Source of the DNA: Octopus sinensis
Lineage: Eukaryota
Assembly: GCF_006345805.1 (NCBI RefSeq)
Contig: NC_043004.1
Coordinates: forward strand, 82,646,001-82,710,000
DNA length: 64,000 nucleotides
Direction: 5' to 3'
Shown: one piece after another, positions 9,951 through 51,789 of the stretch
Layout: the number at the start of each line of letters is the position of its first letter
Position numbering within the stretch: the first letter of the stretch is position 1
Notes under the pieces: generated by a model
Told to the model about the DNA's origin: nothing
The model's input: only the letters and a program-made list of their open reading frames with translations
The model's database searches: none
Position numbers and translations under genes: made by a program

Positions 9951-10320
9951 TATTGTTGATATAGTTCTTTCTATCCACTTTGAAAATTGTTGATTTAATA
10001 TAAATTAGCGGCTATTTATATGTTTTAAGAAGCTTAGCGAGCAATATTCAATTTGAAGTATATTTTAAATCCATAACAACAGATTTGAAATAATCCCTAC
10101 ATACAAAAAAGCGGAAGATATTATATAACAGATTTATCCGATTTCTTCTTTATTTCCAGTTCGTTCGTAACACACGAGATTTGCAGCACTCTAAACTTAA
10201 TATAGAAGGAAAATTGAAGTACTAGAGTAATTAAACAAAAACAAGGCCTCTCTATTTTATGTCAATATATTTATCTTTCTATATAGAAGTAAATTGGGAG
10301 AAATATTTAATTACAAAAAT

Positions 10321-10950
10321 ATGGAACTAAAAGACACACAATTCAATAAAATACTGCAGTTTTATGGAAAAATTAATATTTTTAAGATATCACTTATGAA
10401 CATATCACTGAAGTCTCTCAAATGTAAATATATATGTATCTCTGCTTTTTATATCCTGTATTCTATATATCTGATTGCAAACCCCATTATATATATGTGT
10501 TATCTAATAGAAGCGTATCATGGCGAAACTGATAACATATTTGTATTTATTTATGCACAATTTTTTCTGTGTTTGCTTTCACTCTACTGTCTGATCAAAT
10601 TCTTCCGAAAATCTAAAGGGAAATAAATACACGAAGCATTCACCGAACTTACAATTGAAGAAGACGATGAAAAATTCTATAACAATAACTTAATATTTTC
10701 TTTTATATCACTTTCTATAATGATCTTACTGCTGCCTCTTATATTAGTTATTATGCTCTCCGTCCTCCCGATTCTCATGAAATATGTTTGAAATCCCTCA
10801 ATAAAATATCTAAGCAGCATTAAAACTCTTGATTTTAGTATTTCATTAATTTTCAATCTATTTGATTGTATAACATTTACATGCGTACTATGTGATTGGT
10901 ATATCAATCTAGCAATTGGGATCGCACTGCAGCATGAGTTTAATAAAGTA
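10321..10950 (+). pseudogene. GR-like receptor unit 1 (pseudogene)
   Basis: Starts MELKDTQFNK; in-frame stops TAA 10624-10626 and TGA 10788-10790; truncated by (TA)n right after HEFNKV. Confidence 0.85.
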
Positions 10951-11261
10951 TATATATATATATATATATATATATATATATATATATATATATATATATA
11001 TATATATATATATATATATATATATATATACATATATACTATATATATATATATATATATATATATATATATATATATATATATATATATATATATATAT
11101 ATATATATTTTGTGAAATAGAAAGATGAATAATATTGTTGCAGATTAATCAAAAGTTTAACCGATACCTTGGTAGCAAAAATCACAGCAGAAGACAGCAC
11201 GGTTGGAGGTACAACCCTATGGTGTTGCAACCGTGCGTTGGTGCGGATAATTGAATTTTAA

Positions 11262-11627
11262 TATTATTAGTGAATTGAAGAAATGGAGTTGAACGAAGAT
11301 TGAACAGAAATCGTTTTATTGCATTCTACACGTGTTTCGAAAGCCACAATTTACCAAATTCCGATTGAATAAGGAGACCATATTGTGTCTTTCTCTTCAG
11401 GAAGAAATAGGAAATCCGTTGGGAAAAACAAAAACAGAACAGAGGCGGAGCAAAACAACGGATTTCCATCGGATTTCCTATTTCTTCCTGAAGAGAAAGA
11501 CACAATATGGTCTCCTTATTCAATCGGAATTTGGTAAATTGTGCCTTTTGAAACACGTGTAGAATGCAATAAAACGATTTCTGTTCAATCTTCGTTCAAC
11601 TCCATTTCTTCAATTCACTAATAATAT
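11262..11627. mobile_element. Fold-back element (~160-bp arms, ~50-bp spacer) with one hammerhead ribozyme in each arm
   Basis: Arms are near-perfect reverse complements. The right arm reads ttc-CTGAAGA(11488-11494)...GAAAC(11549-11553)-ACGT-GTA-gaa; the left arm has the same motif on the minus strand. Confidence 0.8.
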
Positions 11628-11684
11628 ATATATATATATATGTATTTCTATATACATATATATATATTCATATATATATGCACA

Positions 11685-47859: not shown

Positions 47860-48500
47860 AATTATTTCTTCTTCCTCTCTTCCTTCTTTCTCCCCTTCTC
47901 TTTTCCATTGACACTCCTTTCAGATACACAGGCACCCACACACACATGCGCACATACACACACACACTCTCACAAGACAATTATTTCTTCTTCCTCTCTT
48001 CCTTCTTTCTTCCCTTCTAAAAAGAAATCGAGACACTTTTTTGAGAAGTGACATTTTGATCCTCTGAAATGACCAGCTAGGTTTGCCATTTCTAAAAACC
48101 AAGAATCATTTACTATTCAAAGACTGACCAGCTGCAAAGATGTCAACACATTTTTTCTTCTTTCTCTTCTCCTTCCTTTCCTTCTCTTTTCCATTGACAC
48201 TCCTTTTAGATACACAGACACCCACACACACGCGCGCACATACACACACTCTCTCACAAGACAATGATAAAAAGAAATCCAGACTATTTTGTGAAAAGTG
48301 ACATTTTGCCCCATCCCCACCCTTGGAGTGACCAGCTGGGTTTGCCATTTCTAAAAGCCAATAATCATTTACTATTGAAAGAATGACCAGCTGCAAAGAT
48401 GTCAACACATTTTCTTCTTTCTGTTCTCCTTCTTCCTTTCTTTCTTTTTTCCATTGACACTTCTTTCAGATAGAAAAGCACACACACACACACACACACA
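47860..48500. repeat. Three degenerate tandem units of ~260-285 bp
   Basis: ttttccattgacact.ctt.cagata recurs at ~47901, 48187 and 48447; gaccagctgcaaagatgtcaacaca occurs twice. Confidence 0.75.
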
Positions 48501-49383
48501 CACACTTGCACTCTCTCACACCCCATTTCTCACCCTCTTGTACTCTCTTATATCCCTCTCCACCCCTACACACTTAATAATACTTTAAAAAGAGACAAAA
48601 TTCTTGAAAAAGTTCAATCTGACGACTCTACTAGAGTGGACGCAAGCGCTATATGATTTATAAAAATCTGTGACGTATTAATAAATATCTGTAAATATAA
48701 ACCATCCAGATTTCTGATTACCCCATTTCTTCTAAGATATATATATATATATATATATATATATATATATATATATAATATATATATATATTATGAGAGG
48801 ATATACAACGAACACGACTCTATTAACTTCATTGATGTTGAGCTTAATCTCATACAGGTAAAATACGAACGATGCCACGAGCCCAATTTCAGTCTTAGGT
48901 ATATAAATGTCAAAAGTAATGTTCCTAGTTATGTAAAAGGCTTTTTTTTAGTTGGTAATATTTCTAAAAGAATTCCTAATTTACCTTCTAATAAGGAAAT
49001 GTTTGACAAAAATGACGACTATAATAATGTGGCACTTAGTAATGCTGAATATAAACAAAAATTGGACTATTATCATAAAAATATGGGTGCCAGTAATTGT
49101 AGATGTTGCCTTTATTAACGATAGGTAAGCTTAATTGTTCTCGTGTGAAAAATGATATACAAAATATGAGAACCAGTGTATTAATTCCTTCTAATACTAT
49201 GAGGAATATAAATAACAGGATAAAAAGAAACAAGCCCCTTATATATTCAATAGCGCTCGAAGATTTGAAAATTATAATGCTTCAGATAAATACGAAACTG
49301 TTGGGTTCATAGTTCTATTCGCTAAGCAAACTAAGGTTAATTTGGTCGGAGTCTTATACAGACTTTTTTCTAAACATTTTACA

Positions 49384-50466
49384 ATGGAAAATATGATATG
49401 ATATTATTAAACTTAGGCTTCTTAGAATTGGTAATTCCGTATCTAATAATTTATGCCAGATTATATCTTTAATTAACGAAATAAAATTATCTAATTTTTA
49501 TGACACTTGTAACAGTAGTACACGCCATAACATTAATACTCATAGAATAAATGTTGTATTATTCTAGTCTTTTATTTGTTTCAGTCATCTGACTGCGGTC
49601 ATGCTGGAGCACCGCATTTTTAGTCGAAAAAGTCGACCCCAGGACTTATTCTTTGTAAGCCTAGTACCTATTTTATCGTTCTGTTTTACCGAACTGCTAA
49701 GTGACAGGGACGTAAAAACATCAACATCAACAATGGTGGGGGAAAAACACAGACACACAAACATACACACATACACATATGTATATATATACGACGGGCT
49801 TCTTTCAGTTTCTGTCTTCCAAATCCACTCAAAAGGTGTTGCTCGGCCTTTTGATATATATATATCACCAAACTTACAATTAAAGAAGACGATCAAGTAT
49901 TCTATAATAATAACACGTTTTCTTTTAAGACATTTTCTGTACTTGTATTCCTACCTGTAATTATTCAATTTATTGTAAATTTATTGCCGTTTGGCATGAA
50001 CGATATTGGTAGTTTATCAACAGTTTTTTTAACATTTATAATAATAGACAATTTATTAAATAGCATAACAACTGCGTCCCTGCTATTTGATTGGTATATT
50101 GATCTAGCAATTGGGACTGCACTGCTATATGAGTTTAATAAAGTAGCGAGCGAGGCTCAGAGATACGTAGAAGAAAATCAATCAGACACTTCGTATTTCT
50201 TTAAGAAATATAAAGAGATTACAGAAATATGTAACACACATGATACTCTGAGTAGAATACTGTATTTAGTAAATGAATCATTTCAGTTGACTTCGGGATT
50301 TATCGCACTCTGTAGTATTCCTGTATCTTGTACTGCAACTTACGGAATTATAAATGGCTCATTTAAAAATACATCATCTATATACATTCCCGTTATGTTT
50401 GCGGCTTCTTGCAACATGGTGACTTTGATCATAATGGTGTGGATTGGAGTTCGTTTAAATAAATCG
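49384..50466 (+). pseudogene. GR-like receptor unit 6: decayed 5' part interrupted by a SINE, 3' 200 codons still open
   Basis: Relic YDT...HNINTHRI upstream; open frame 49867-50466 includes HDTLSRILYLVNESF; donor GTAAGT at 50467. Confidence 0.8.
49572..49850 (-). mobile_element. SINE family B inserted in unit 6
   Basis: Reverse complement of the 3' two-thirds of 14739-15145. Confidence 0.85.
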
Positions 50467-51789
50467 GTAAGTTTTATATATAATTCTGTCAAACAAGTTA
50501 TTTTCGAATATTTAGTATAGATATTACATCATAAAAGATATCGAATTAGCATATTCATTATCGTGTGGAAAGACTGTGACTCCAGTAACATCGGTTTTTT
50601 TAAAGCTTTTTTGTATCATTCCTTCCATTGTCCGTCTTGTCACTTTCGTTTCCCAAATGAAAACATTGGATAAATGTGGAATAATGAACTAAAATCTTCC
50701 ATCCTTACCACTATGACTATTATCACCACCGACATTCTGCTCATTCTCTGATTACATTATTCATTCATTCACACTTTCTCACTCTTGGTTGTCGCATTTA
50801 GCAACCATTCATTGTAAAACGTCTTAGGGACGCCAAGCAAATTCTCGCTTATCCAAGAACTCCAGAAGGCTTGAGTGGGGAGATAGAAAACAATTCACAT
50901 AGACTAACTTTTGTCCTGTGTCAATAATGTCTTTATTTTCAGGACACAAAGGACCGACATTCTGATAACTTCAGTAACAATGTACGAATGTTTTTTAACA
51001 ATGTACGAATGTTTTTTCTGATGTTTTTCTGATGCATTTCCTAATAGTCTTTCTTTCTTTCTTTCTTTCTTCTTCCGCTTCTCCTCTTCCTCCACCTCCT
51101 TCGTCTCTTCATTTTGTTCTTTTCCTTCTTTTCCTCCTTCTGAATGTTTATTTATGCATACAAACCTGTGTTTTTTTGAAAATATTTACACATTACCAGC
51201 TACACACACACACACTCAAATATATATATCTGTGAGTTTAAGGCGGCGAGCTAACAGAAACGTTAGCACGCCGGGCGAAATGCGCAGCCGTTTTTCGCCT
51301 GCCGTTACGTTCTAAGTTCAAATTCTGCCGCGGTCGACTTTGTCTTTCATCCTTTCGGGGTCGATAAATTAAGTACCAGTTACGTACTGGTATCAATGTA
51401 ATCGACTTAATCCATTTGTCTGCCCTTGTTTGTCCCCTCTGTGTTTAGCCCCCTTGTGGGTAGAAAAGAAATAGGTAGTTCCTCTGCCTTTACGTTTTGA
51501 GTTCAAATTCCAACAAGGTCGACTTTACTTTTCTTCCTTTCGAGGTCGATAAATTAAGTACCACTTGCGTTCTTGGTTCGAGCTAATCGAATAACTCCCT
51601 CTCCAAAAATGTCGGGCCTTGTGCCTAGAGTAGAAAGGCATATATGAGTGAGTATCTGTATGTGCATATGTATGTGTGTCGTTGTGTCTATCTATGTATT
51701 TATCTATCTATCTATTTGTCTATCTACACATTTACACATTTATATATATGGTTTTCTGTCTATGAAAATATTTATATATTTATAAATGC

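Follow-up and report, generated by a model that had tools for sequence, protein, structure and literature searches.

A probable array of alternative first exons sharing one set of terminal exons in a gustatory-receptor-like gene cluster of Octopus sinensis

The DNA described here is a 64-kb stretch of the Octopus sinensis genome (contig C8:82,646,001-82,710,000, forward strand; hereafter the window, numbered from its first base). It is AT-rich and contains long (TA)n-type microsatellites and copies of LINE (long interspersed nuclear element) retrotransposons, among which there are six homologous receptor units, two of them (units 4 and 5) intact. The window is very probably the interior of a cluster with a variable/constant organization that encodes gustatory-receptor-like (GRL) proteins, in which long alternative first exons are spliced onto one shared set of three short exons (set A) located outside the window. 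The exon of unit 4 (40416-41366, +; 951 nucleotides (nt), 317 codons) runs uninterrupted from its ATG to a phase-0 donor, TCG|GTAAGT, with the GT at 41367, and encodes the transmembrane helices TM1-TM6 of a receptor similar to the insect gustatory receptors (GRs). That of unit 5 (45896-46837, +; 942 nt, 314 codons) is also intact and ends at a phase-0 donor with the GT at 46838.

The shared exons were recognized through the database entries of the family. A profile of the window exons, compared to 1.84 billion representative proteins, retrieved 18 hits, most of which end as intron read-through (VSY..., VSV...). Two of them, XP_036361419.1 (isoform X3 of LOC118764607) and XP_036361423.1 (isoform X3 of LOC118764608), have different variable parts (about 50% identity, estimated by eye) and share a nearly identical tail of 71 residues, VHSIT.SIHYMQFQ....EVVAKILVFLNRLTTESHGIDVGGCFVITPSSTLTMIGSFITYILVVIQTK... 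In the genome this tail is divided among three exons: a, of 23 amino acids (aa); b, of 30 aa; and c, of 18 aa followed by the stop, with TYILVVIQT. They supply the loop between TM6 and TM7 and TM7 itself. A protein search of the genome found only six complete a-b-c sets against 54 variable units, and a genome-wide DNA search for exon b gave exactly six copies, belonging to the same six sets: A (C8:82,785,443-82,788,356, +), B (C8:82,805,762-82,808,989, +), C (C8:82,830,727-82,833,683, +), D (C8:82,862,733-82,866,981, +), E (C8:83,177,998-83,171,912, -) and F (C8:83,108,157-83,101,843, -). The boundaries between the variable exon and a, between a and b and between b and c are in phase 0, with AG acceptors and GT donors, in all six sets.

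Set A lies outside the window, at the equivalent of window positions 139,443-142,356, and the acceptor of its exon a is 122,954, 109,292, 98,076, 92,605 and 88,976 nt downstream of the five donors found in the window. An earlier reading of the window from its sequence alone (the original prediction) had suggested that short phase-0 TM7 exons might lie beyond it, and the search downstream located them in set A, 89-123 kb past these donors. The TM7 motif expected there, TY-x5-QF, has to be amended to TY-x5-QT, as the sequence of exon c is T-Y-I-L-V-V-I-Q-T in each of the six sets, apart from M/L variants in the hydrophobic run.

The variable exons are equally confined in the genome. Searching with the exon of unit 4 gave 67 matches, all of them on C8 between 82.50 and 83.26 Mb, that could be merged into 54 variable units, 28 of them full-length and stop-free. 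A typical unit consists of a non-coding leader of about 150 nt followed by 311-320 codons for TM1-TM6. They are distributed in six clusters, each with one constant set. A group at 82.505-82.853 Mb has 41 units, all but one on the plus strand, and another at 83.112-83.259 Mb has 14, mostly on the minus strand, so that the two groups converge. Cluster A (82,504,824-82,782,038, 277 kb) includes the window as an interior segment and comprises 35 variable units, 15 intact and one inverted; 16 variable units lie within the gap-free 142.6 kb that go from the window start to set A. The remaining clusters contain one unit (B, intact), two (C, both broken, none intact), three (D, one intact), ten (E, seven intact, two being inverted fragments) and four (F, three intact). 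Broken variable exons inverted inside otherwise co-oriented clusters were found at C8:82,623,156-82,624,102 (-), 83,203,570-83,203,962 (+) and 83,215,125-83,215,460 (+).

The donor that closes the variable exons is a conspicuous feature of the array. CGGTAAGT occurs five times in the 64-kb window, on the plus strand only (G of the GT at 16489, 30151, 41367, 46838 and 50467), where a rough estimate from base composition gives about 0.7 per strand by chance. All five sites terminate homologous receptor reading frames of about 315 codons in phase 0, in full agreement with the common CG|GTAAGT donor that had been proposed at these positions. From the rest of the array we have fetched 30 paralogous exons, of which 27 carry (CG or CA)|GTAAGT at the equivalent codon, mostly as TCG|GTAAGT, with variants such as TCA|GTAAGT in minus strand copies.

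The use of shared exons by different variable exons can be seen in the RefSeq isoforms of the region, whose exons we have located by aligning the proteins to the genome. Isoform X1 of LOC118764608 (389 aa) connects the variable exon at 82,748,771 to set A over an intron of 35.7 kb that skips three intact variable exons, and isoform X3 of the same locus connects the one at 82,766,337 to set A, skipping one intact variable exon. On the minus strand, isoform X2 of LOC118764607 starts from the most distal variable exon of its cluster (83,259,117) and reaches set E 80 kb away, skipping seven units, and isoforms X3 and X4 join the exon at 83,243,660 to the same set, skipping six. Taken together, four variable exons from outside the window are connected to shared sets by isoform models with introns of 18-80 kb, and isoform X2 of LOC106880719 in O. 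bimaculoides has the same build. With set A located, six sets for 54 exons and isoforms that share sets, the idea put forward originally, long 5' exons alternatively spliced to shared TM7 exons beyond the array, is borne out at the level of the locus. Exon a of sets A and E has an internal CAG acceptor 42 nt into the exon, an in-frame alternative 3' splice site that drops 14 residues (VHSIT.SIHYMQFQ); the tail begins at DIKPEVVAK in isoforms X2 and X4 of LOC118764607 and in the O. bimaculoides isoform.

The cluster encodes GRL proteins of the '7TMIC' superfamily, to which the insect odorant receptors (ORs) and GRs belong. The conceptual product of unit 4 and the set A tail matches Pfam 7tm_7 (PF08395) with 37.6 bits (E = 2.1e-9) over positions 21-367 of 370, above the curated cut-off of 26.6 bits; the exon of unit 4 alone reaches 22.5 bits and its match ends at profile position 280. 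Among four RefSeq isoforms, X4 passes the cut-off with 30.3 bits, the one from O. bimaculoides obtains 25.1 bits, and neither X1 nor X2 is matched. An AlphaFold2 model of the paralogous isoform X1, which is not a product of the window, had a mean predicted local distance difference test (pLDDT) of 73.9 and a predicted template modelling score (pTM) of 0.72, with the tail below a pLDDT of 50. Compared to the PDB with Foldseek, the 14 best matches of this model were all insect ORs, GRs or Orco (probability 0.99-1.00, template modelling score (TM-score) 0.39-0.65), followed by a sharp fall to unrelated folds. The model of the unit 4 exon itself, derived from an alignment of five sequences, was unusable (pLDDT 39). 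Three terminal phase-0 introns are the pattern of the family (PMC7746228; PMC6175461), and the a-b-c boundaries of octopus agree in phase with the 0-0-0 pattern of insects (PMC6175461).

Both intact units of the window also appear to be maintained. They differ from every paralogue compared by a synonymous divergence (dS) of at least 0.46, with pairwise ratios of non-synonymous to synonymous divergence (dN/dS) of 0.34-0.68. We estimate that, at the local composition, some 8% of codons drawn at random would be stops, and 20 paralogous exons are open over 311-320 codons. That units 4 and 5 have stayed open in spite of such divergence implies selection on the frame. For both of them, set A would be the only route to a receptor with seven helices.

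The alternative that every unit is completed by small 3' exons of its own, located ahead of the following unit, had been considered already in the original prediction as independent genes whose private 3' exons had decayed or been missed. We have searched for such exons in several ways. Within the window, TY-x5-QF and relaxed forms of it are absent from the plus strand of every spacer between units, a six-frame scan giving chance or wrong-strand hits only, and profile hidden Markov models (HMMs) of the real 3' exons reach at most 8 bits, compared to 50-85 bits for true copies. The earlier observation of no intact TYhhhhhQF exon between units 4 and 5 or after unit 5 thus holds by motif scan and by profile. 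We have then extended the window downstream as far as set A (82,646,001-82,788,600, 142,600 bases, no N) and scanned the result with protein HMMs and nhmmer profiles derived from all six sets. Set A was recovered with one copy each of a, b and c (54-83 bits for the protein HMMs, 80-127 bits for nhmmer), and the best a, b or c hit outside it did not exceed 9.4 bits. Neither method gave an a, b or c exon above noise in the 1.5 kb 3' of 27 paralogous exons with a recognizable donor. The genome-wide protein and DNA searches found no set or relic within 82.50-82.785 Mb. A six-frame search of the whole genome with Pfam 7tm_7 gave weak scattered hits only and located no TM7 exons.

The sequences that follow the donors were also compared with each other. 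All-against-all blastn and translated comparisons of these spacers gave no conserved segment in a single frame; what they yielded was intron homology within one subfamily, transposon pieces and nucleotide repeats in multiple frames. In that subfamily, about 550 nt past some donors can be aligned at 68-77% identity, a conservation that might have spoken for private exons, but there are stops in every frame. For units 4 and 5, similarity to other units ceases within 30-90 nt of the donor. Two decayed relics of exon b, with stops and 47-48% identity, were detected at C8:82,889,829-82,889,963 (-) and 83,067,865-83,067,984 (-), in the gap of 235 kb between the convergent groups; they suggest the loss of further clusters. 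Since relics at 47-50% identity are detectable, moderately diverged private copies would have shown up. As nothing but set A rises above 9.4 bits in the gap-free 142.6 kb, and genome-wide there are six sets and two relics with none in 82.50-82.785 Mb, we consider private 3' exons excluded for the window by these searches, even in a decayed but recognizable state. We have found no support for separate genes, each completed by its own small exons, and give this explanation hardly any credence.

The upstream ends of the units are more ambiguous. An AG following a pyrimidine-rich tract is found 147-161 nt before the ATG at 10158, 28732, 40255 and 45743, and is replaced by TG at 15384; the positions, the distances and the TG are as had been claimed. 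The interpretation of these sites as acceptors, making each unit an acceptor-to-donor cassette, is probably wrong. In four out of five window units, sequence comparison revealed a TATA-like box 33-36 nt 5' of the AG, which is the geometry of a core promoter. The putative core promoters are those of unit 1 (10122-10160, +; TATATAA at 10122 and CCAGTTC at 10158, 36 nt from the start of the TATA to the A of the AG), unit 3 (28699-28734, +; TATATAA at 28699 and CCAGTTC at 28732, 33 nt), unit 5 (45707-45745, +; TATAAAT at 45707 and TTAGTTC at 45743, 36 nt) and unit 2 (15351-15386, +), where both elements are mutated (TATGTAA at 15351, CCTGTTC at 15384). The context of the AG in the window subfamily, CCAGTTC or TTAGTTC, matches the initiator consensus YYANWYY. 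A second subfamily (L017, L018, L025, L027, L022 and L024), which includes the variable exon of RefSeq isoform X1, has no AG at the aligned position; it has a TATA-like box, then CTTTAT and then an initiator-like TCAATTT or TTAAATT. Furthermore, the leaders between AG and ATG contain in-frame stops in four of five units and their lengths (161, 156, 147, 159 and 151 nt for units 1 to 5) are no consistent multiple of three, so that no upstream coding exon can be joined. For these reasons the AG is more likely to mark the start of transcription of each exon than a 3' splice site, and every unit would have its own TATA/initiator promoter. The two options left open originally, promoter choice or mutually exclusive exons, therefore fare differently: the TATA/initiator context and the leader stops favour the former and disfavour the latter as internal exons.

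According to this reading each unit would be a long alternative first coding exon. Following the model of Gr28b and Gr39a in insects, transcription would begin at the promoter belonging to a single variable exon; the variable exons downstream of it would be removed within one very long intron; and the donor closest to the cap would be joined to the acceptor of exon a, 89-123 kb away for the units of the window. Units 4 and 5 would be transcribed and spliced to set A likewise.

There are several points that weigh against this picture of alternative first exons with shared ends. The RefSeq isoforms are automated models, and no annotated protein or transcript includes unit 4 or unit 5, so their splicing to set A rests on the layout, the maintenance of the frame and the precedent in the same cluster. 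Exon c keeps the T, Y and Q of TYhhhhhQF, three of the four signature residues, with the final F replaced by T. Four of the six window units are broken, which indicates that this part of the array is decaying. As for the promoters, TATA-like strings are common in DNA of 30% G+C, and in unit 4 (40235-40257, +; TATATAA at 40235, CCAGGTC at 40255) the two elements stand only 20 nt apart due to a deletion of 16 nt relative to the paralogues. The AG with its pyrimidine-rich tract also resembles a reasonable 3' splice site. It could then be the acceptor for a shared or private non-coding 5' exon and the variable exons would be internal, mutually exclusive cassettes, the shared 3' exons remaining the same. 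The tract is similar to those before the real constant-exon acceptors, the AG is conserved across the window subfamily and its mutation to TG affects unit 2, itself broken. We nevertheless regard internal cassettes, and with them the AG as acceptor, as unlikely, given the core-promoter spacing and initiator fit described above, the absence of the AG from a subfamily that provides the variable exon of isoform X1, the stop-bearing leaders of inconsistent length and the presence of an own ATG in every unit.

It can also be argued that the window units are silent relics, that only the exons nearest to each constant set are used and that recency or chance explains the intact state of units 4 and 5. 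Broken units amount to 20 of 35 in the cluster and to four of six in the window itself, units 4 and 5 have no annotated product and all the annotated isoforms of cluster A use variable exons at 37 kb or less from set A. Against this, both units keep 314-317 open codons at a dS of at least 0.46 in AT-rich DNA, with dN/dS at 0.34-0.68 rather than about 1, and their donors, start codons and upstream elements are intact. Isoform X2 in the sister cluster uses the most distal variable exon, at 80 kb. Moreover, transcripts of chemoreceptors are as a rule scarce, and automated annotation frequently overlooks them. Silence of the window units thus appears quite improbable to us, and alternative first exons that share set A remain the preferred explanation.

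The closest known counterparts of this organization are insect GR/OR loci in which tandem long first exons are spliced into three shared short final exons; the largest of them in Blattella gives 13 receptors (PMC6175461). The loci Gr28b, Gr39a and Gr23a of Drosophila and Gr60a-m of Blattella germanica have in common with the octopus clusters the protein superfamily, the tandem long first exons on the same strand coding up to TM6, the conserved phase-0 donor, the three shared short phase-0 final exons for the conserved C-terminus with the TM7 motif (PMC6175461) and the pseudogenic state of some first exons. The differences are that the host is a cephalopod mollusc and not an arthropod; that the octopus array is larger and far more spread, with a single constant set for 35 first exons (15 intact) that extend over 277 kb; that there are six clusters in two convergent groups; that the layout implies introns of up to about 280 kb; and that QT, not QF, closes the TM7 motif.

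A similar logic is found in unrelated proteins. The protocadherin (Pcdh) alpha and gamma clusters and UGT1A also have many variable first exons, presumably with own promoters in octopus as well, a few shared constant exons and interspersed pseudo-exons, and splice the cap-proximal donor over 100 kb or more, removing the downstream variable exons as intron. Their protein families are unrelated to that of octopus, where the constant part is a predicted transmembrane, pore-lining helix and not a cytoplasmic tail. Pcdh promoters have a conserved sequence element (CSE), and their choice is CTCF-mediated and stochastic; the likeness of the octopus locus to them rests on layout. Cassettes of the Dscam1 type resemble the octopus units in being tandem homologous alternative exons of which one enters each mRNA. 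However, those of Dscam1 are internal coding exons with working acceptors, flanked by constitutive coding exons, whereas the octopus units have their own start codon, a stop-bearing leader and a TATA/initiator-like context.

Within octopuses, LOC118764608 and LOC118764607 of O. sinensis and LOC106880719 of O. bimaculoides belong to the same family and locus, and their isoforms, annotated as 'uncharacterized protein', consist of a variable exon plus the shared tail; the RefSeq models cover only four variable exons, none from the window. Our literature search found no paper discussing these three models and none on cephalopod GR-like receptors, which is not proof that there are none. The locus is apparently an undescribed case of a known design. 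As a more speculative extension, in which we have rather little confidence, this could be the largest chemoreceptor locus with alternative first exons yet (54 variable exons, six sets, two convergent groups) and possibly the first outside arthropods, the design being either ancestral to protostome GR genes or convergent. A promoter choice similar to that of protocadherins might perhaps give sensory cells their receptor identities, and exon b might act as an RNA-level element for splicing over 100-280 kb, unless the sets were homogenized by gene conversion.

Contact chemoreception in octopus is currently attributed to chemotactile receptors derived from nicotinic receptors, as stated in the review PMC12635824, which cites Allard et al. 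(2023). The six transcription units of the locus described here could give rise to as many as 28 GR-like receptors and, if so, would represent a second candidate family of ionotropic chemoreceptors in a cephalopod. A layout in which long variable first exons precede three phase-0 exons used in common is not restricted to insects. On the practical side, gene finders that assume a separate gene for every receptor exon will overlook the majority of these proteins, and may report truncated products of six helices that run into the intron, as most database entries of the family do. An example of how this family confuses gene prediction is an Octopus vulgaris 'hypothetical predicted protein' of 360 aa, a chimeric model in which an unrelated N-terminus is combined with the central portion of one variable exon and, out of order, the beginning of another.

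The constant sets have some peculiarities of their own. Sets A, B and C (82,785,201-82,833,900) are recent segmental duplicates, with introns 80-98% identical and a spacing of 20-25 kb, so that clusters B and C seem to have been copied from the 3' end of cluster A. Among sets A, E and F, exon b (82,786,419-82,786,508; 83,173,959-83,174,048; 83,106,093-83,106,182) has a nucleotide identity of 97-98%, while their flanking introns are at about 55% (background) and exons a and c at 81-87%. Such a pattern points to gene conversion limited to exon b or to a constraint at the nucleotide level.

The other variable exons of the window are in different states of decay. Unit 1 (10321-10956, +) has two in-frame stops, is truncated past residue ~212 and lacks a donor. 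Unit 2 (15542-16488, +) has a frameshift near 16190 and retains the donor CG|GTAAGT at 16489. Unit 3 (28881-30150, +), with its donor retained at 30151, is broken by three stops and by the partial duplication, in tandem, of its 5' region: the segment 28881-29288 corresponds to part of 29365-30150, residues ~57-137 are present twice and the three stops are in the first copy. Unit 6 (49783-50466, +) is truncated at the 5' end (residues ~80-316) and has one in-frame TGA, its donor being retained at 50467. On the plus strand, neither the spacer after unit 4 (41367-45706), which would be intronic if unit 4 is transcribed and contains microsatellites and the 3' fragment of a LINE only, nor that after unit 5 (46838-49782) contains a homologue of the constant exons. 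The stretch from unit 6 to the window end (50467-64000, +) has LINE copies and no constant exons.

The rest of the window is mostly repetitive. A Gln/Thr-rich open frame with two CCCH-like motifs (..ICRY..R.RLC..RDC.FTHLPGT..) is found at 62675-63727 (+) and, as an inverted copy, at 1-597 (-); it has no Pfam match and may be a retroelement-associated gene. Copies of LINE-type retrotransposons, which lack long terminal repeats, are located in the spacers at 59093-61747 (+), 23172-26945 (+), 18152-20741 (-), 7348-7845 (+) and 42300-42644 (+). One copy has an open endonuclease/reverse-transcriptase frame of 884 codons (Pfam RVT_1, Exo_endo_phos_2), the others being fragmented. Microsatellites of the types (TA)n, (TATG)n and (TGTA)n are very abundant (4908-5399, 9220-9756, 10677-11144, 14521-14985, 39460-40107, 45009-45581, 58441-59061 and elsewhere), and some of them cut into or truncate variable exons, as happens after unit 1.

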